Below are positions 6,561 through 59,780 of a stretch of DNA of 64,000 bases, one piece after another. The stretch lies in contig NW_025767290.1 in the NCBI RefSeq assembly GCF_003918875.1, positions 868,001 through 932,000 of the forward strand, given 5' to 3'. The position numbers and the translations under genes are program-made. A model generated the notes under the pieces. It was not told where the DNA came from, made no database searches, and saw only the letters and a list, made by a program, of their open reading frames with translations. Source of the DNA: Haliotis rubra. Lineage: Eukaryota. Position 1 is the first letter of the stretch; each line of letters begins with the position of its first letter.

Positions 6561-8084
6561 CGCTCCCAAAAAAAAACGCATATAGGAATTTCAACTGTAT
6601 TTTTATGTTTATTTTGAAACATCTTGTAGGCTTTATGAGTAAATGAAATATAGCGAAATTGCACACTGGGAATGCAGACTTATCCGTCTTTCGCACCAAC
6701 TCGAGGAAAGTCAGTGTGAGTGTCACATGGAAACGTGTGGTGGCGCTGAAGTCAATATCTCGTGTGACCACCGTGGGCATCCAGAACTGCACGGCATCGC
6801 CTCGGCATCGAACGAATAAGTCTCAAAATCTCGTGTTGCCCAATCGCAGCCCACTCTGCCTGTAGTGCCTGTGCGAGTTGCTGAAGTGTCTGGGGCTGAG
6901 GGTTACGGCGTCGCACCCGTCTGTCCAGGGCATCCCACAGATGTTCGATCGGGTTTAAGTCCGGTGGACTTGAGGGCCAGGGGAACACATTGATGTTGTG
7001 GTTCTGGAGGAAGTCTCTGGTGTGACGTGCTGTGTGGGGCCTGGCATTGTCCTGTTGAAACAACTCCCTCTGGCGATCAATGATTGGAAGGAGGTGTGGG
7101 CGTAGGATTTCGTCACAGTACCGTTGAGCTGTCAGGTTGCCCTGGATCATCACCAAATCACTTCTCCTAGGGCAGGTGATCCCTCCCCACATCTTAACAC
7201 TCCCCCGGCCGAATCTGTCCACCTGGGGAACGCAAGCGTCGGCGAAACGTTCACGTCGACGTCTGTACACCCGCATTCTTCAAACGCGTCGTTCCAATAG
7301 AAATCGTGATTCATCACTGAACCAGATTCTGCGCCAGTTCGGTAGGTTCCAGGCCTGAGCGTTGGTGCACCATTGAACTCGATGTCGACGATTTTGTTGT
7401 CGAAGCAGAGGGCCAAAATAATGTCTTCTGGCACGTAAACCAGCATCTCTCAACCTGTTCCTGACGGTCTGTGCAGAAAGCCTCCTCAATCCGGGTATTT
7501 GTCGAGCGGTACTGGTCGCCGTAGCTGTTCGATGACGCAGGTGATGTACCCGGATGTAGAGATCCTGCGCCGCAGCGGTCGCTCGAGGTTGCCCACTACG
7601 AGGGGCATCTGCTACCGCATTCTGCCGACGATATCTCTCCCAGAGCCGTGAAATGGTGCTTTGGTGAACATTCATGCGTCGGGCAACTGCACGTTGAGAC
7701 TGGCCAGCTTCAAGCAAACCAATGGCGATATGACGGTTGGCTTCACTTAGACGTGGCATTTTGCGTTCGTCAACAACATTCCAAATACAGTGAATAATCG
7801 ACAGACAACGATCAACCTTTCATACCCATCATTGAGACTATCTGATCCCCAAGTTTCACGTGCATTGCATGTGAATTGTGTATTCTGTGACACTAAACGC
7901 CGAAATTGAAATTCATGCTGTTAAATACGGGTATTTTACGGATGGTGCGTTTTGTTGTGATGTTTCAAAACATAAACACCATAGGACTCATAAACAGAGC
8001 AAAACCTTTTGTAAAATGAATCACGTTTTAATTCATTGCTACATGAAATTGCTATTTTAATGATGCGTTTCTTTTTTGGGAGAG
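6561..8084 (-). mobile_element. Tc1/mariner DNA transposon (DD34E), full length about 1.5 kb
   Basis: Imperfect TIRs CGCTCCCAAAAAAAAACGCAT / ATGCGTTTCTTTTTTGGGAGAG, flanked by TA at 6559-6560 and 8085-8086; contains a transposase ORF. Confidence 0.92.
6752..7759 (-). pseudogene. Tc1 transposase with one in-frame nonsense codon
   Basis: ORFs 7280-7759 and 6752-7276 are in the same frame, separated only by TGA at 7280-7282. Paired-like HTH N-terminus; FSDESRF, QQDNARPH and SPPDLNPIEHLW motifs (34 residues between D and E); GGHTRY end. Confidence 0.92.
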
Positions 8085-9440: not shown

Positions 9441-9731
9441 GTAATCAAAATGGTTGTCCTTATCATAACGCCAACAGTACTAGCGTCAAAATTCAAATAA
9501 GTTATTGTTTTGCAGAGATATGATGTGTGCACGTTTACATTTTACCTTTTTAATAATAACTCATAAATTTTGAAGCATGGCCTAACAAAAGTTTCTCTTC
9601 GCGGTCCATATGTTAAAGTCGCCTCAGATTGAAGCACCCGATCTCTAAATAATCCATGTAAAAAACCATGCAGATACTATTATACTCAAAACATATGCTG
9701 CAACTGAGATAGAGAACAAATGAATTCTTAC

Positions 9732-10098
9732 CTGATAGGTCAGCCATAGCAAGATTAAGTAACAGCAAATTCGTCATAGTTTTCATGGAAGTATTTGATA
9801 GGACAATTGTAAGGATGAGTAAGTTTCCCACAAGCGCCATCACAAACACCGGCACATACACCGCAGTGAGGAGTATATTCGGTGTCTCATCGTGCGCCTC
9901 CAGCTCGTCCTTAAAATCATCCATAATTGAAATCCAACTTCGGTTATGAGTAGTATTAAATAAATTCAAGGTTGAAGTGTTCGCATCACTAATGTGTAAA
10001 AACCAATTGAGAATTTCCGTCAACATCAGATCTTCATATGAGCGCGGCATGATTCTGACGGACTTGAATCTCTTGATGAAGTCAGCTACTGATGCCAT
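9732..10098 (-). CDS. class A (rhodopsin-like) GPCR, probable neuropeptide receptor, first coding exon (N-terminus, TM1, start of TM2)
   Basis: Sequons NTS, NTT, NRS; TM1 VYVPVFVMALVGNLLILTIV (GN motif); ICL1/TM2 MKTMTNLLLLNLAMADL (TN..L.NLA.AD); strong phase-1 donor TCAG|GTAAGA at 9732/9731. The true start could be a later Met. Downstream exons were not identified in the window. Confidence 0.88.
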
Positions 10099-11460: not shown

Positions 11461-14297
11461 TTTTACAGATTAAAGATTGTATGCAGCAGAGAGGGTTCGG
11501 GTGATCCTGGCACGGTCAGGCTGGTAAGGCTCATCATCAGCTCAGGGCCCTTGCCCCCTCTACACGCAGCCCAGACAGCGAATGGGACTTCTCCCAGGAA
11601 ACGCTGCCTAGTCGAACCCACCAAGAACCTTCCGGAGAATATGAAGGCTCCCCAACACTGCAGCCTTCTGCATTACCCAGAGTGTCAGAAGGGCTGTACT
11701 CCCGGTGGAGAACCCGGGCACTCTCCTGATCTGCGCCAAGAGATCAGGAGGTACCAAACCAAGGGCACCGAGAACAATGGGGAGCCTGACGACAGTGTAC
11801 TTGGGATGCAAGTGAGACATTTCAAAGGCGAGGTCCGCATATTTATCATGCTTTTCCTTAATCTTGCCAATCACATTGGTGTCAAAAGGGACAGAAAATT
11901 CTATGATATAAATAAATTCATTGGCTTTATCAAAAAGGACAAGATCAGGTTTGTTAGCTGGAATTCTTCTGAGGCTGTATATGGGCCTATTCCACAGAAG
12001 TTTGAAAGCATCATTTTCCATGACGCCCTGGACATGTTCAGGGTCGTACCATGGATGGACCTCGGAGTCAAAGCCACAGGCATGTCGGAGACGGTAGTAA
12101 AAGCAACGAGCCATGCCATCATGTCGTTTAAGATATGCTGTTTGTGCCAAGGAAGGGCATCCACTGACAAGGTGTTGGACAGTCTCTGTAAATTCATTGC
12201 AAAGTCGACATTTCATGTTAATATTCTCTTTAAGAATCACATTTAGGCGATTACGAGTGGGAAGTGACTGGTCCTGAGCAGCAAAAAAGGAAGCCCTCAG
12301 TTTCACATTTAAGACCAGCCGACTTCATCCAGGCGAAGGAGTCGGTGGGATTGCTATTCTGTTCAACACACTGCATGTACACACGATGCAATGGCTTCTC
12401 AGAAAGCTTCTCCACAAACGACCGACTCTGGGCAGACTTGGTAAAGGACTTCACCTGGTTTACTCCCATTGCTGTACCGTCCAGCAGTACATTGCCATCA
12501 GCAAAGTCAACCTCAAATCTCAGATTCTGTCCAACAACCTTGGCACGCTTAAAATAACTGTGGAATTCCTTGCTTTCATCATGAGTCTTCACATGCATCA
12601 CCAGAGGATCATCCGATAAATAAATATGTACAAAAGTACACAATAACATTCTGTCATGAAGAGCCTCCACATTAATCAAACCCCGACCTCCAGAATTGAT
12701 TGGCATGTATAAACGGTTAAGAGAGGAACGAGGGTGGTGGGCTCTGTTATCAGACATGATCCTTCTGGTCAGACGGTCAAGACTCTGGATGTCTTGTTTT
12801 GTCCAATCAACTACTCCAAAGGAATAGGAGAGGACTGGCACAGCAAAAGTATTGGTGGCTTTGACCTTGTTACGAGCATTTAGCTCTGAGCTCCAGATTT
12901 TCTTTAAACGAGATGTATACTCGGCCCGAAGTTTTTCTTGAATCTGGGCATTCTGGAGCTTGTCTCGAACTTGCATTCCAAGATAGGTGTAGGCCTGATC
13001 TTCCACAAGATGCTCAATAACTCCTCCCCCTTGTAACCTGACCGATCCATCATTAATTACCTTGCCTCGTTTCAAATGAAGAGTATTACATTTGTCGAGT
13101 CCAAATGTCATGCCAATATCATTAGAAAAGGACTCGACAAGGAGAACCTGCTCTTTCAATTGGAATCTCCTTTGGCAAGGAGTTCGATGTCATCCATGTA
13201 AAGGAGATGAGTAAGAGGTGTTGGGGATCTGTGCTGAGGAGGTCCGGGATGGTAACCCTCCTCTTTATTGAGCAGAAAGCTCAAAGGATTTAGAGACAGA
13301 CAAAAAAGCAAAGGACTAAAGGAATCCCCTGAAATATTCCCCTTCTGATTGGAATAGATTCCGAAGTCTGCACCTGCCCTTTGTGAGTACATCTCAAGTT
13401 GAGTCGACCAGCAACTCATCAAAGACTTGAGTAAATCAAGTAGTCGCTCAGGGAGGTCAATACAATGAAGAGACTTCAGAATCCATTCGTGAGGGACAGA
13501 GTCGTATGCTTTTTTGTAGTCAATCCAGCACATGGAGAGGTTGCGGTGATAAGTTTTAGCCTCTTCCAAAATCATTTTCTGTACAAGAAGTTGATCCTTG
13601 CACCCCAACATCCCTTTCTTGCTCCCCCTTCTGCTCTCTGTAAATGATATCATTGGAAGAGCAGTAAGATGACACGAGGTTTGTCAAACACCCTGTGAAT
13701 ATTTTGTATTGTGTATTCAAACATGTGATAGGGCGGAAGTTTTGGGATCAGTCAAGTCTCCTTTCTTGGGGAGAAGTATTGTGCGACCTTTGCAGAACCA
13801 TGGAGGAACATCACCTGTGTCCACGAGAGTATTAAAACAGTGTAGTAACGGTGTTTGGACACAGGGGAACAGTTTCCAATACCGGTTTCGAATGCCATCA
13901 GGCCCTGGAGCTGTATTAGATTTGGACTTTTTTATAACACTTTTCAGGCAATCTGGTGAGATGTAACAGACAAACGACCTAGTTACCTTCTCATGCATTG
14001 CATGGTCATAATCACGGACCCATGGTGCCTCAAGGTTACAGTTGCCGGGTACAGACCACAACTGTTTCCAGAACCTTTCATTGGCATCCATGGGAGGCCG
14101 TTTGTCATGTTCACCATCACCTTTTGTTTTCAGTTGCCTGTAGAGGTGTTTTTCATTGGTTCTAAAAAGTTTATTTTGTTTGATGAATTTATTTTTCTTT
14201 TCCCATTTTTTCTTTCTTTCAGTCCAAACCTTTATTTTGGCCTTAAGGGAATCGACAATTTGGAGAAGTACCTTTTCCTTTGTTGTCTTGTATTGTA
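11460..14297 (-). mobile_element. 5'-truncated R4/Dong-like non-LTR retrotransposon (RT + CCHC + restriction-like endonuclease), frameshifted
   Basis: ORF pieces 13717-14091 (APGPDGI), 13156-13653 (WIDYKKAYDSVPH, GDSFSPLLF, LLYMDD), 12251-13159 (FGLDKC, YTYLG, GGRGL) and 11608-12306 (CRLC..ETVQHLVSGC; KPDLVLFD...IIEFSVP...K..KY). Flanked by TAA repeats on both sides. Confidence 0.9.
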
Positions 14298-41801: not shown

Positions 41802-42701
41802 TCACACTTCCTGTAAAGGTATCACGTTGAAACGTCCATTAGTGTTAATCTTTGGTATAGTTTTGGACACAACACCTTCCTCGGCTGCCTCGCTCTCTGG
41901 TGTGAAACTGTCGTTTGTTTCTACGTTTGTACTCTCCGACAAGGGCGACACTTCACTACTTGAATTACCCTTGTGATATCTCACCGAATTTAATTCCATG
42001 TCTATAGGGGAATTATTTGCACCTGCCTTTAAATCTGCTGATACACTCCCCTTGTCCGTTTCATAATTCAATACTGACCCAAATGACCTTAAACTTGATG
42101 GTGTCTGGCCAGGGGGGAAGGTCACTGACTCTTCTTCTTCTTCTTCCGTTTCCGGTATAGACTCCTGTCTCTCTATGGTGAAGGCTGATATACACCTGAC
42201 GAATTCTGGTCTTCTGTGACTAAAGGTTAATGGGACTCCCTCCATTGCATCCGGTGACCCTACAGAATGAACGTCAACACCACAGCGCTTCAGGGACAAC
42301 GTTAACGGGTTCATGTCTGGCGTCATCACCGGCGTTGACGCCGCCGTGGAAGATGGAGTGTATTTCCAAGCGCTCCCATGGATGGAGTTGATGAGGTTGT
42401 GAACCGCCGAGAGCTGCCGCTTCTTTTCAAGAAGATCCCGATGCTCCTGCAACCCTTTCACAAACATATCGGTATCTCTCTCAATTGAATAACTACGACG
42501 GCGTCTCACGTAGATACCGAGGACGCCGATCACCCCAATGCCATACACCAACACAACGGCAACGGTGAACTTCATAGCGCCCTGGTGGTCATACGCCTCT
42601 GTTGTTGGCCCGGAACAAGGGTACCCTGTCGTTGTCGGTGATCCACTGCCTGTCACAGGAACACTCATATTCCCTGGTATTGCCGTTGTGTTAACACCCA
42701 T
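41802..42701 (-). CDS. intronless single-pass membrane protein, 299 aa, KCNE-like TM region
   Basis: Strong start context ACGATGG; no signal peptide; sequons NTT and NMS; TM FTVAVVLVYGIGVIGVLGIYV followed by RRRR; long Ser/Thr/Glu-rich tail ending GRFNVIPLQEV; 900-nt open frame in non-repeat DNA. Confidence 0.8.
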   Translation of the reverse strand: MGVNTTAIPGNMSVPVTGSGSPTTTGYPCSGPTTEAYDHQGAMKFTVAVVLVYGIGVIGVLGIYVRRRRSYSIERDTDMFVKGLQEHRDLLEKKRQLSAVHNLINSIHGSAWKYTPSSTAASTPVMTPDMNPLTLSLKRCGVDVHSVGSPDAMEGVPLTFSHRRPEFVRCISAFTIERQESIPETEEEEEESVTFPPGQTPSSLRSFGSVLNYETDKGSVSADLKAGANNSPIDMELNSVRYHKGNSSSEVSPLSESTNVETNDSFTPESEAAEEGVVSKTIPKINTNGRFNVIPLQEV

Positions 42702-53850: not shown

Positions 53851-54080
53851 ACGTACACCGCTATACATGGAGTGAGTGACGCTCAACACCGCATCACCAA
53901 TGTTGCAGCTATTCTCAGCCAGCCTACACATAAAGGCTTGTCGCAAAACCACTGATCACTTGCAATGACATTACAAAATAGCGTGGCCTTATTTATCAGT
54001 TTATCAAAATATGGAATGTAATTGATTATGATGACCTGGTTAATGTACATGTATTCATCTGTATGCTTCGAAATAATGCA

Positions 54081-54354
54081 ACCCGTGAAGATCCGGGGTA
54101 GAATAGGTCTTCAGCAACCCATGTGCTTGCCATAAAAGGCGACTATGCTTGTCGTAAGAGGCGAACTAACGGGATCGGGTGGTCAGTTTCGCTGACTTGG
54201 TTGACACATGTCATCGGTTCCCAATTGCGTAGATCGATGCTCATGATGTTGATCACTGGATTGTCTGGTCCAGACTCGATTATTTACAGACCGCCGCCAT
54301 ATAGCTGGGATATTGCTGAGTGCGGCGTAAAACTAAACTCACTCACTCACTCAC
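54081..54354 (+). mobile_element. SINE-like family A copy (full length, duplicated internal hairpin)
   Basis: ACCCGTGAAGATCCGGGG...(CTCA)n; imperfect TSD GAAA.AATGCA. Confidence 0.88.
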
Positions 54355-54912
54355 TGGAAAGAATGCATTCTGTTTATGTAAATTCCTGTACATCTTGATT
54401 TAACAATGCATTTGTAAGTGGTTCATTATTCATCAATACGTAAATACCTTGTCTTATGTGGACATGGTTTGCTGCAATGGTTTCTGCAGGTGAATAATTG
54501 CCTTGTACTTGCATGTGTTTGTGACGAGCGAAACTGATGTGGCGGGATACGCTCACCCATATAGTAGTGGTTTCTGTACACATGCTTATAAGTCTGAATT
54601 GTTTTATGAACTATGTTTAGTCAAATATTCTACAGATATTTTATCGCTATTGTTCGTATTTGTATTGTTTCTTTTCTTGTGTGTTTTTCTTCATTCCATT
54701 TGTCAGTTTGCTGTAAACACCGTCAAGTGGACCGTCGCCACACATCTATTTCTGGATCAATAAGATCGAATATGTGGTAGGAGTCAGTTAGTGTGAGACC
54801 AAATATCGGTGATGAGTTATATCGATAATCTCATATAATAAGAGAGGAATATCGATAAGCCCAAATCGTTGCAGTACTAGGAAATAGCCTATTTTCCACT
54901 GATTTACGCACC

Positions 54913-55163
54913 TGAGTGAGTGAGTGAGTTTAGTTTTACGCCACACTCAGCAATATTCCAGCTATATGGCGGCGGTCTGTAAATAATCGAATCTGTATCA
55001 GACAATCCAGTGATCAACAGCATGAGCATCGATCTGCGCAATTGGGAACCGATGACATGTATCAACCAAGTCAGCAAGCCTGACCACCCGATCCTGTTGT
55101 TTGTCGCCTCTTACGACAAGCATGGGTTACTGAAGGTTCATTCTAACCCGGACCTTCACGGGT
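54913..55163 (-). mobile_element. SINE-like family A copy
   Basis: full length; imperfect TSD TGATTTAC.CAC. Confidence 0.88.
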
Positions 55164-55164
55164 G

Positions 55165-55680
55165 ATTTACCCACTAGAAATAGAAGAAACCATAGAGACT
55201 GCTTCATACTTAGATCTAATAATCAAGATTCTCACAGTGCCAAACGCTTTGCACACACATGTATGACAAGAGGAATTGCTTCCACATTTCGACAGTCAGC
55301 TTTCCTATAATTCCGTGCAATATTCCAGGAGCTCCAACCTTTCGGACTATATTTCACAACTTTTTAGATAGACTCTAGCATGCTCTTTGTGGCAAGATTT
55401 CAAAGAAGGTAAGACGGCTCTGGCGGAGTCTAAGGGTCTTTGATCACGTTTACAGCTTTCAAGGCCTCAGTAAATGTTTCAAAACGTTTCGTGGCAGACC
55501 CGTGGTTGACATTTACAACTGACTTGTGTGATATTTCCCCGTGTACTTTGAGCGACTTGGGCTTGAATGTGTTTGTGAAGGTGCAACTCTGATGGCAAGA
55601 GACGCCTACCGTTCAGACACCAGGCGCCATCTCTGTTTTACAGAGATTGATGGATGCTTGCTCATGATATGACCGAATCG
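55165..55680 (+). pseudogene. Penelope-like RT relic 2
   Basis: YPLEIEETIETASYLDL...MYDKRNCF...VSFP...NIPGAPTFG...ACSLWQDF. Confidence 0.7.
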
Positions 55681-57281
55681 TATGATTAACGATATTTTTA
55701 TGAACATTAAAATGTATTTGACCCTCTTCACCAATCAGTTACCAATACACTGTCACTCATAAGTACACATAGCCTGTAATATTGATTAAAAATGTAAAAA
55801 CATGATGTGATGGATTATGCTGTCGCCGGGGAAAGAGATTTTGTTTTGTTTCAAAACGTTTCTTTCTTGCAAGTAGCGGATCCTCTGAACTTATCTGGAC
55901 GGATTGTCTGGGTTGTTCATAAGGAGAGAGTTGCTATGCGGCGTCGGGCTGTAAATACAATTTGGGATAAGTGTTATAATGGCGCTGCTTCCGGTACATG
56001 CATATCCTTTGCGCAAACACCTGGTGTCACCGCTGATCTTCAACGGTCTAGTCAGATCATTTTCACAGCTTTTTTGCCCTCATTACAACATGGAATCTGT
56101 TTCTAAAGACTCTCAACACCCTGTCTATTGTTTTGCACGTTATGTGTTATTACGTTAATAGACGTTACTTCTGTTTATAGTCTACTTGACAATCTAAGTT
56201 GCACAAAGCGTCTTGTTTGTAAGAAACTAAACTCCAAAATGATGTCAGTCTTTTTTAAACTTTACCACTGGATGAATCCAAGGGGCAAGTACAGGGTGCC
56301 GACAAACCAAGAATGATAATCAGGATGAATCTTGGATTCGAACCCACTATCATCAAATACTGGCACGTCCAAAGGCCGCAACTCTATACAGCCAATTCCA
56401 GCGCCTCGGCGGATTGTCATCTAGATACGTAGCCCTATTATGGACATAAATCCGATGACGTCCCAACACAGTACAGTGAGTCTGTTTTTAAGACGTTTAA
56501 ATCGACAATATATTTCGACAATACAACCCGTCAATCCTCACGCGAGAGGATGCGTGGTTTAACCGTATGGTGTTATTGAATGCATCAGCTTTCAAACAAT
56601 GCATTAAGAATAATTGTCACATACTGTCACCATAGAATCTAAATCTACCCACAACCATACGAGACACGACAGTTAACAAGCTACGCGCATTGGTATCATC
56701 TGGTTCCCTGAACTCGCGGTAGCAAGCGGGATCGATAAAACCGTCCGATCAATACTAGCGTGTTCGCATGCTCCTGTAGCAGTGATCGCTCGGTTCTACT
56801 ATAACCATTTTGCTTCGTCTTAATTGGATTTCCAGACCTCAAAGTGTGTTTACAACGCTGTTCTCCAAAAAGCGTCTTAACTACAGATGGAGTGAAAATC
56901 TGCTCGTAGCACTAATATGGTTGACGATAAAATTGAAGGACATCGTCCGGTTTCCGCTCCTATCAGTGACAGCTGCGCGGGCACACACTGACGACAGGAA
57001 GTAGTTCTTGTCGTCTGATAACCCAAGACGATGTTGTGATGACTGGACGTCACATATGCTCCGACTTGTTATATTTCTTCTCGTTTTGTGAAGGTCACAC
57101 AACCCCTATCGCTGACGTCAGGTCGTCCTGGGATAAGCTTATTGTGGCATGGTGTCTCTGACGGCTTCCGACGAGAGAGTATGTTGTGTCGCCGTGGCGG
57201 GATAATCTATACCTGAACTGTGGTGACATTTCCCCGCGTACCGTTCCAGTTCCTTTGCGTGTGACACTGCAGTTCACAGTG

Positions 57282-57782
57282 ATGTCAATTCGGAACGGTT
57301 TACCGAATGGAACCATTTTCTTCCACAATGCCAAAAGTCCCGTTGTTGTGGTCAACGGGACTGTGATACAGCTGCAGATTAAAGAGCCCTACAGAGACAG
57401 TCAACTGAACGAGCTCCTCTATGTCATCATCGTCATTGTTTTCTACGCAACAGCATTGATGACACTCATCATTACACAAATACGTCGACAACGCCGTGAA
57501 GGACAGGACATTGACTACTACGACGAATACCTTCAACGGAACCAGGAGGTAAAACGCACCTGTCAAACCGCTGTTAAAATGATCAAGAAGCAGGACGCAC
57601 CCCCCGTACCCCCAACCCTCAACCTACCCGCTGACGGGGAGGGGTCGGGGACTACATCGACTGAAGAGGATGGTGGGAATGATGCTAACAGAAGCAAGAA
57701 ATTCCAGAGGGACCGCTCTCCAATTCTTAGAGAGCGGTCACCAATGCTTGAAAGCATACCGGACGAGGAACCTGTAGAATAA
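57282..57782 (+). CDS. intronless single-pass membrane protein, 166 aa, KCNE-like
   Basis: First ATG of the 57186-57782 frame is at 57282. Two NGT sequons; no signal peptide; TM LLYVIIVIVFYATALMTLIITQI followed by RRQRRE..DIDYYDEYL; Pro/acidic tail ending LESIPDEEPVE; followed by a long AT-rich 3'UTR-like region with AATAAA at 59261. Confidence 0.8.
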   Translation: MSIRNGLPNGTIFFHNAKSPVVVVNGTVIQLQIKEPYRDSQLNELLYVIIVIVFYATALMTLIITQIRRQRREGQDIDYYDEYLQRNQEVKRTCQTAVKMIKKQDAPPVPPTLNLPADGEGSGTTSTEEDGGNDANRSKKFQRDRSPILRERSPMLESIPDEEPVE

Positions 57783-59439
57783 GTATCATAATGTTATAAC
57801 TTTGTTGCTTTGTCTGTGGTGCTCTGATTAAATCATGGAGTAAAACGCTTGATATCGAGCAATAATATCCTGAATCTCACAGCTTGTGTCTAAAGCTGTA
57901 GCTGCAAATCTAGCCAAATAACGAGGCTGTCCTAACCCTTCTTCCTGGGACCAGCGCCATGAGGTGTCTGGAACCTCGTAACCGATAATAGTTTTCATTA
58001 TCCAGTCCTAAACTGTCAAATAGGATAATCCGGGAGAGCGACACAGCAGACTGGCTGTTACAGACTAGCCTTGGGGTAGAAAGCTGCAGACAGTGAATAA
58101 CAAGTGAGCAGGACAGCCACATCATATTTTCAACAGTTTCCCCATGTAATGGATTTGTCTACATTTATACTCGGATCACAATGTTCATACAATCAGACGG
58201 TGCAGTCATCAGATTCATGATTGAGAAGAGACCTGTTGATGCCATTAAAACAGCATATCAATTTGGGAGTATGCATGTTAACAGAGATTGGTTCGGCTTA
58301 GTGATGTGTGCTAATATTTTCTACGTTGTGTTAATCAACAGGGGTATAACTATATGCACTGACAGAACATTTTATCGATTGACAAAACAACATGGCTGTT
58401 ATGAGGATACCTCTTTGTAGTGCTGTGTGTTGTCACTCAACCTGTCCCATCTACTGGTAGTACCTCAGTGGTAGTGTTAACACGGGTCATTAATCCACAA
58501 GTTAAACAGAATTCTTTCTCAGCGCCAAATTACCATCTGTAAATGAAACTTCTTGCATTGTTAATTAACAAATTCCAAATATTACTGGCTACATATTAAT
58601 TACACTGATGTTGTGATAACATGTTGGCGAGGTCACCATTTTCTTGAAATCGAAATGCAGAAGATTCTCAAAATATTAAATATAAAAATATAAAATATTT
58701 ATCAATTTATATCTCTACTTTTTATAGCGGTGATTATGATGCCCCTATGTTTTTAATATTATTAACATTGATATTTGAATAGCACGTTGGAAAGGTCACT
58801 ATTTTTATAATTGAAATTGAACAGAAAATGAATGGCTCTTAATCAATGCTCTTCATCAAAGTAAAACAACAGTGATCATGATGTCCCCGTGTTTTTATAG
58901 CTGTAATATATTTCCTATGAAAACACAAAACTGAAGAACGTTTATTTTGTATAACGGTCCTATATTTTTCAACATTTCTGGTACCGTTACATGCATATTA
59001 CAGATATGTTACAGAGTATTTCATCATTTGATTACAATACTTATAAATAGAAAACATATAATTGCATGAAACTGGAACTGAAAATTACTCGACCACATTG
59101 ACGTGATTTAATGTCACTGTGTGAAAAGCATGTTATTTTAAACACAATTAAATTCAATTGATATGTGAAAAGAAAGCTCTGTCTGTTTTAGATTTGAGCT
59201 TTTAGTGTTGTAAATCTATTCAACTGAACCATTTTGTCAAGTGGTACTGCATTGTAATATAATAAATTATATAACAACGTCCATTTCAGAGACACTGTTG
59301 TGTTTCAAAAATGCCAGCTAGAGAAATCAATACAAATAATTTGATCTTCGTTACCGAAATGAATATATTTACATAATATTATGCTTCTTTGTATGCCATT
59401 GTCTTTATGGCGAAAATGAAACACATAAATGTTCAGGTA

Positions 59440-59780
59440 TTTATGTCATACCAGATCAGAACTATACTTCAGATTGAATCTTGTTGACCTTTCAAAGAGC
59501 TCATACGGCTCTTGCTGAGAAATTGTTTGATCAAGGTTACAATATTCAAGGGTTCAGTAAAGCTTTCAAAATTTATTGTTAGACATGTGGAGGATGTTTC
59601 CAAATATAGGTCAACAGTGACAAAAGTGATGTTTGATGCGATTCCTTATTTCTGCTTTAACCGTATGTTCATGGGTTTGTATTCTATAAAGAATTGAGTT
59701 GCACTTGCATGTGTTTGTGCCTGGTGAAACCGGTGAGTCAGGATACGCTCATACAAATGGACATGCTTATGATGCAGTCG
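59440..59780 (+). pseudogene. Penelope-like element C-terminal relic 3
   Basis: FQRAHTALAEKLFDQGY....FSKAFK...RHVEDVSKY; the adjacent non-coding block 59697-59770 is homologous to 54503-54590. Confidence 0.55.

Follow-up and report, generated by a model that had tools for sequence, protein, structure and literature searches.

At positions 57282-57782, the forward strand of the window (the whole 64,000-nucleotide stretch of Haliotis rubra DNA analysed here) carries a real gene under strong protein-level constraint. Taken as a whole, our reading, to which we give a probability of about two in three (~0.68), is that of an intron-free gene for a predicted single-pass glycoprotein, a divergent invertebrate member of the KCNE family and a putative channel subunit. 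The parts of this reading differ in strength: sequence comparison indicates that the protein is very probably a distant but genuine member of the KCNE superfamily (MinK/MiRP; Pfam ISK_Channel) by homology, and the odds of a function as K+ channel auxiliary subunit, argued by analogy, are a little better than even. In heart, ear and epithelia, the way KCNQ1 and other K+ channels behave is determined by KCNE subunits. Recent papers hold that the KCNE family is not found in invertebrates, and full-text literature searches returned no paper linking KCNE to molluscs or amphioxus, or PF02060 to invertebrates.

The segment 57408-57540 (+) translates as NELLYVIIVIVFYATALMTLIITQIRRQRRE, followed by GQDI, DYYDEYL and QR, exactly as the preliminary description of this DNA had given it, and is part of a complete open frame (Table 1). 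The first ATG of this frame, at 57282, has a G (purine) at -3 and lies 41 codons after an in-frame stop; the frame runs unbroken from there to the stop ending at 57782, colinear with full-length orthologues. Because of this colinearity, and because the Lottia gigantea orthologue (KB203019.1, L001:10001-10465) is called as one exon (465 nt, 154 aa), we consider the coding sequence to be free of introns; a whole coding sequence in one exon is a KCNE trait, and the window gene has it. G+C content of the window is ~40%. No named Haliotis protein was found for this gene by the search that did find some for the neighbouring gene at 42 kb, and for its product that search gave only a 107-aa Logan fragment (93% identity, starting at the internal Met60). 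Abalone genome annotations may be missing this small single-exon gene.

The interval 57091-58500 is covered by contigs of runs X1, X2 and X8 (all presumed RNA), including an X8 contig of 2687 nt (depth 97) that spans 57182 to beyond 59500. The preceding 55288-56943 is uncovered in these three runs, and the DNA-like run X5 covers every bin. This coverage, coming from presumed-RNA runs, fits a terminal exon that is likely transcribed with a 3' UTR of ~2 kb. On the 5' side the contigs reach 57182 (X8) and 57091 (X1), and no convincing splice acceptor was seen in the window sequence near these ends.

Table 1. Features of the KCNE-like gene and of the rest of the window (window coordinates; parts and topology of the protein are predictions).
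Feature	Position	Strand	Details
KCNE-like protein, complete single-exon CDS	57282-57782	+	166 codons plus stop (57780-57782)
N-terminal ectodomain, residues 1-44	57282-57413	+	two N-x-T sequons; ends in conserved R-D-S-Q-L-N-E
Sequon N9	57306-57314	+	N-x-T
Sequon N25	57354-57362	+	N25 and T27 invariant in core alignment A2, at least 90% in A1
Segment of the preliminary description	57408-57540	+	N43 to R86: ectodomain end, helix, stop-transfer, DYYDEYL motif
Single transmembrane helix, residues 45-67, LLYVIIVIVFYATALMTLIITQI	57414-57482	+	sole 19-residue span with Kyte-Doolittle >1.6
Basic stop-transfer RRQRRE, residues 68-73	57483-57500	+	aligns with KSKRRE (KCNE2) and RSKKLE (KCNE1)
Cytoplasmic juxtamembrane helix	57513-57593	+	starts D78-Y-Y-D-E-Y-L84, then QRNQEVKRTCQTA...
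C-terminal acidic motif S-P-M-L-E-S-I-P-D-E-E, residues 153-163	57738-57770	+	conserved in clade A
Probable long 3' UTR	57783-59500, continuing past 59500	+	X8 contig coverage (presumed RNA)
42-kb ORF	41802-42701	-	299-aa single-pass protein; N-terminal N-T-T and N-M-S sequons; R-R-R-R stop-transfer
Two nearby copies of a very high-copy interspersed repeat	54080-54355 and 54915-55163		contig depth up to ~7 million in all four runs; hundreds of joints, some opposite-strand
Tc1/mariner-type transposase remnant	6752-7759	-	two adjacent ORFs with HTH_Tnp_Tc3_2/HTH_38 and DDE_3
Reverse-transcriptase fragment	13156-13653	-	RVT_1
ORF, possibly a GPCR exon	9613-10098	-	weakly like the start of the rhodopsin-type 7TM receptor model, 22.4 bits vs. 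30.5 cut-off

A word-index protein search recovered 30 gastropod orthologues (E 1e-32 to 1e-58) from limpets (Patella, Lottia), Gigantopelta, caenogastropods and heterobranchs, all without a name and none with a Pfam domain. Among gastropods, 37 columns of the full alignment (A1) and 39 of the core alignment (A2) are invariant, nearly the whole helix included. The conserved parts comprise the second sequon (N25-x-T27), R-D-S-Q-L-N-E, practically all membrane-helix residues, [KR]-[KR]-Q-R-R-E-G, D-Y-Y-D-E-Y-L-Q-R-N, V-K-x-T-C-Q and the C-terminal S-P-M-L-E-S-I-P-D-E-E, with Y79 to R86, V90, K91, T93 and C94 invariant. Compared with the Lottia core, 51 of 60 residues are identical and 33 of those 51 codons differ, which indicates that the constraint acts on the protein and not on the DNA. 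The invariance of the helix from limpets to pulmonates argues, moreover, for a tight and conserved membrane partner.

The predicted topology is that of a KCNE protein: N-terminus outside and bearing sequons, no cleaved signal peptide, and one helix. By hydropathy, the ectodomain lacks a signal-peptide-like hydrophobic start, and four arginines right after the helix provide a positive cytoplasmic flank; together with the sequons, hydropathy and the positive-inside count bear out the N-out arrangement without signal peptide that the preliminary description had expected. Across 64 invertebrate cores, Y47, V51, F54, Y55 and E82 are kept in at least 90% of the sequences (Y47 and Y55 in all of them). 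The first four are spaced i, i+4, i+7 and i+8 and occupy one face of the helix, as expected of a helix packing against a partner. Within the C-terminal acidic motif, S153, P154, L156, E157, S158, I159 and D161 are at least 90% conserved, and bivalve relatives retain LE[ST]I.DE. An AF2 model built with the family alignment (mean pLDDT 67.6) places three short strands within residues 10-30 and helices at 39-73 and 79-104, separated by a break at 74-78; the tail is predicted to be disordered. A Foldseek search of this model against the PDB gave nothing below E 0.5, an outcome to be expected of a helix-linker-helix protein.

On the single sequence, the KCNE match does not go beyond chance and is only suggestive. 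The protein scored 14.8 bits (E 0.024) against Pfam PF02060 (ISK_Channel), short of the curated gathering cut-off of 22.1 bits, and for this reason we do not file it as a canonical KCNE1-5 orthologue. The alignment fell in the right register (protein 27-88 to model 26-86), no other channel family was matched, and 22 of the 31 gastropod sequences matched ISK_Channel at E<1 (best orthologue E 0.0097). Searched against 177,635 distinct PDB chains, many of them single-pass, the single sequence returned KCNE2 as the top chain (E 0.49) and KCNE1 at E 1.6. The gastropod-only profiles A1 and A2 retrieved no KCNE chain from the PDB at E<=10, because the gastropod family is too invariant to generalise.

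An exhaustive HMMER search over 1.84 billion representatives with A2 (an 83-column gastropod core profile) found just 72 proteins at E<=1e-3, all of one architecture (small, single-pass, with N-terminal sequons) and with the core [DN]-[AE]-L-L-Y-[IV]-x-V-V-x-x-F-Y-A ... I-[KR]-R ... Y-Y-x-E-[YF]-[LV]-x-R. When the 63 new proteins (the 72 minus the window's own) were compared with Pfam, ISK_Channel was matched by 33 at E<=0.01 and by 15 at E<=1.3e-4, i.e., approximately the curated cut-off, and at the latter level no other Pfam family was matched by any of the 63. Two clade-A proteins (see below), P0045 and P0047, combine E-values of 1e-14 to 1e-16 to A2 with ISK_Channel scores of 22.4 and 22.9 bits, above the cut-off. 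A competing match of the window protein, to RCR (PF12273; 16.6 bits, E 0.014, vs. a cut-off of 27.8), was shared at E<=0.01 by only 1 of the 63 wider relatives, as against the 33 with ISK_Channel; RCR proteins are fungal chitin-synthesis regulators, and we treat this match as compositional.

The relatives fall into two groups. Clade A has the core N-E-L-L-Y-V...F-Y-A...Q-I-[KR]-[KR]-Q-R-R-E-G...D-Y-Y-D-E-Y-L-Q-R-N and includes the window gene, the gastropods, the unionid bivalves Potamilus and Sinanodonta and the annelid Owenia. Clade B is of the type D-A-L-L-Y-I-V-V-V-L ... K-Y-I-R-R-E and includes Pinctada, Sinanodonta, Biomphalaria, the horseshoe crab Tachypleus, the ticks Ixodes and Dermacentor, the spider Stegodyphus and the amphioxus Branchiostoma; names were available for only some relatives, and both taxon ranges are minima. 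Clade-B proteins, all "uncharacterized" in databases, have in common with the window protein [DN]-[AE]-L-L-Y, F-Y-A, I-R-R, Y-Y-x-E-[YF] and the N-terminal sequons, and differ in carrying K-Y-I-R-R-E where clade A has T-Q-I-[KR]-R-Q. Several of them pass the ISK_Channel cut-off unaided (e.g., P0057, P0060 and P0063 at 24.7, 25.5 and 31.0 bits). A2 and the clade-B profile (A5) were aligned by hhalign over 65 ungapped columns (probability 98.8%, E 1.2e-16). The best explanation is a lophotrochozoan clade A that is sister to a wider clade B of molluscs, chelicerates and amphioxus.

Two further observations concern these clades. Biomphalaria carries both types, P0016 of clade A and P0082 of clade B (715 aa). 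Most of the clade-B proteins P0056-P0094 end in E-[ST]-x-V or a similar PDZ-ligand-type tail, and clade A in the acidic L-E-S-I-P-D-E-E; judging from these termini, the two clades may differ in scaffolding or sorting.

Widening the invertebrate profile brought the vertebrate KCNE structures closer. With wide clade A (A4), KCNE2 was found at E 0.023 and the next unrelated protein, CD9, at 0.57, some KCNE1 chains scoring no better. With A5, KCNE2, KCNE1 and KCNE3 were found at 0.003-0.011, with the next unrelated chain at 0.32. With all 64 invertebrate sequences (A6), KCNE2 reached 1.7e-4, KCNE1 7e-4 to 1.5e-3 and KCNE3 8.5e-3 to 0.011, and the next unrelated chain stood at 2.4; the E-values for KCNE thus drop from A4 through A5 to A6. 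The matched chains are KCNE2 (MiRP1; 2m0q), KCNE1 (MinK; 2k21, 9u7f, 9vec) and KCNE3 (6v01, 2ndj, 9wd8). KCNE homology is statistically supported since A2 reaches P0045 and P0047, which both lie past the ISK_Channel cut-off, and since A6 finds KCNE1, KCNE2 and KCNE3. The final link, from invertebrate profile to vertebrate KCNE, is of moderate strength (E ~1e-4 over ~60 residues, about a third of them hydrophobic helix).

Against the clade-B HMM, built without any clade-A sequence, the window protein scored 56.3 bits, whereas 500 shuffles in which ectodomain, helix, juxtamembrane region and tail were each shuffled within themselves gave 0.7 +/- 4.2 bits (maximum 16.4). The family of the 42-kb ORF, also single-pass with sequons and an R-R-R-R stop-transfer, served as a natural decoy, and retrieved no KCNE chain from the PDB at E<=10. 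In a feature search of the ESM Atlas, the top match was a cluster of chordate KCNE4 (0.95, with 220 of 256 features in common) and the second a molluscan cluster with PF02060 on 25% of its members, with 16 of 40 matches in the ISK_Channel set; other single-pass families (SRTM1, DUF5527, TMIE, reprimo) were listed at 0.75-0.87. The preliminary description had argued that the segment is more than a generic transmembrane helix and should be set against shuffled helices and random single-pass proteins with basic stop-transfer residues. Shuffles and decoy family both uphold this view, and the transitive profile homology, the language-model search with KCNE clusters in front and the architecture (N-out with sequons, no signal peptide, one helix, basic stop-transfer, single exon) agree with it.

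In every HMMER alignment of the window protein with human KCNE2 and KCNE1, obtained unguided, the register was identical, LY pairing with LY, RRE with RRE and D-Y-Y-D-E-Y-L with D-P-Y-H-Q-Y-I. Against KCNE1, E44, Y47, V51 and F54 of the window protein correspond to E43, Y46, V50 and F53; A58-L59-M60 to the "triplet" F57-T58-L59; I67-R68, E73 and D78 to I66-R67, E72 and D76; and Y80 and Y83-L84 to F78 and Y81-I82, with a one-residue gap in KCNE1 before D76. The register proposed in the preliminary description is reproduced here, apart from this single-residue gap, and the KCNE3 string that it gave (SDPYHVYI) matches the sequence in the PDB profile alignment. Its suggestion of a KCNE3/KCNE4-like segment holds for KCNE in general, whereas a specific affinity to KCNE3 or KCNE4 was not borne out. 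In D78-Y-Y-D-E-Y-L84, the aspartate, the aromatic residue and Y-[IL] of the KCNE motif D-P-[FY]-x-x-Y-I are kept, and the proline is replaced by tyrosine.

The mid-helix "activation triplet" of KCNE proteins sets the gating effect, being F-T-L in KCNE1 and T-V-G in KCNE3. At this position the window protein has A-L-M, with L59 and M60 invariant in gastropods and A58 nearly so, a chemistry unlike that of any studied KCNE and without threonine. Like human KCNE1, KCNE2 and KCNE3, the protein is small and, by prediction, single-pass with its N-terminus outside, N-terminal sequons and no signal peptide, and in the AF2 model it has the same succession of helix, short break and cytoplasmic helix. Pairwise identity to human KCNE in the PDB is ~20% over 49 residues; apart from the triplet, the window protein differs from human KCNE1, KCNE2 and KCNE3 in an ectodomain predicted as strands. 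The tail motifs QRN.EVK.TCQ and SPMLESIPDEE are its own, the C-terminal one having no KCNE counterpart. KCNE4, whose cluster is nearest in the ESM Atlas, also has a relatively long cytoplasmic tail, and the R-R-E end of the stop-transfer is as in the KCNE4 string of the preliminary description. By description, however, the window protein lacks the tetra-leucine juxtamembrane motif of KCNE4 and lamprey KCNE0 (PMC13516689). Among invertebrates, C. elegans MPS-1 to MPS-4 are described as single-pass KCNE-like K+ channel partners (PMC13516689); these MiRP/KCNE-like proteins, which we set beside the window protein by description, are nematode-specific and treated as non-canonical in the literature.

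The 42-kb ORF is also a real gene, with orthologues in Haliotis asinina (84%), H. cracherodii (77%) and Patella caerulea (44%) and no Pfam match. We considered it as a paralogue forming a "divergent KCNE pair" with the window gene, a reading that was not supported: BLASTP gave no similarity in the helix and juxtamembrane region, and the ORF scored 7-8 bits against A4 and A5, inside shuffle noise, and found no KCNE in the PDB. Aligned with A6 by hhalign, its family gave a probability of 38% (E 3.3e-4) in the same helix register, and from these sequence comparisons it is possibly a very distant relative of the KCNE-like family. The Lottia orthologue of the KCNE-like gene is flanked by a B-box/MATH gene and a CH-domain (CAMSAP_CH) gene, and no 42-kb-type gene was found within 10 kb of it; in Patella, orthologues of both window genes lie on one chromosome, ~570 locus tags apart.

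Invertebrates possess Kv7/KCNQ-type channels, and a channel of this type would be the most plausible partner of the window protein. By analogy with the KCNQ1-KCNE1 and KCNQ1-KCNE3 complexes, the transmembrane helix would lie in a cleft between the pore and the voltage sensor of a tetrameric voltage-gated K+ channel, and the DYYDEYL helix would touch the cytoplasmic gate region of the channel. So placed, the protein could tune the gating or the trafficking of its partner, and the acidic SPMLESIPDEE tail may serve in sorting or phosphorylation.

A quite different account, which we regard as unlikely, is that a conserved single-pass protein resembles KCNE by convergence, through its aromatic-rich helix, basic stop-transfer and tyrosine-rich juxtamembrane region, and belongs to another complex (e.g., as a transporter, receptor or non-K+ channel subunit or chaperone). 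Sub-threshold single-sequence scores with RCR and ISK_Channel tied, gastropod-only profiles without a KCNE match in the PDB, an ectodomain of strands and a C-terminal motif without KCNE equivalent, and the further single-pass families in the Atlas would all sit well with it. However, convergence leaves unexplained why KCNE chains lead the PDB matches of three invertebrate profiles with E-values that fall as diversity rises, why the curated ISK_Channel level is attained by 15 of 63 relatives when no other family is matched that well by any of them, and why one register is held throughout, past the helix and into D-x-[YF]-x-x-Y-[ILV], when a single-pass poly-Arg control family finds no KCNE at all. 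That the frame is open by chance, or a pseudogene without product, has a negligible probability: the covering runs are only presumed RNA and no named abalone protein was found, but the 30 gastropod orthologues with their invariant core and the synonymous turnover beside amino-acid identity refute it, as do the intact ATG-to-stop frame, the conserved C-terminal motif and the relatives in several phyla.

Granting KCNE homology, the main partner could be other than Kv7/KCNQ (another Kv class, or an HCN- or Ca2+-channel-type partner), or the role mainly one in trafficking, an option to which we likewise assign a low probability. Vertebrate KCNEs are promiscuous, and C. elegans MPS proteins pair with KVS-1; the triplet of the window protein differs (A-L-M), and its conserved acidic C-terminal motif suggests sorting. 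One study reports that KCNE3 modulates Kv2.1, Kv3.4 and Kv4.x in expression systems (PMC11659587). On the other side, KCNQ1 is the best-documented KCNE partner, and all solved complexes matched here are KCNQ1-KCNE complexes.

Broadly speaking, it is likely that the bilaterian ancestor already had a KCNE superfamily of at least two ancient clades, which lives on without a name in molluscs, annelids, chelicerates and amphioxus, the window gene being a representative of clade A. Database pipelines tag a few relatives with PF02060, which suggests a family that is unrecognised rather than invisible. If this reading is true, the origin of KCNE, now placed within vertebrates, would move back to early bilaterians, which would explain the source of the vertebrate genes, and structure-function studies could draw on the invertebrate proteins as new natural variants in the "triplet" and in the juxtamembrane motifs. 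Aplysia, Lymnaea and Biomphalaria, classic models of neurophysiology, would in turn gain an unrecognised candidate channel subunit.
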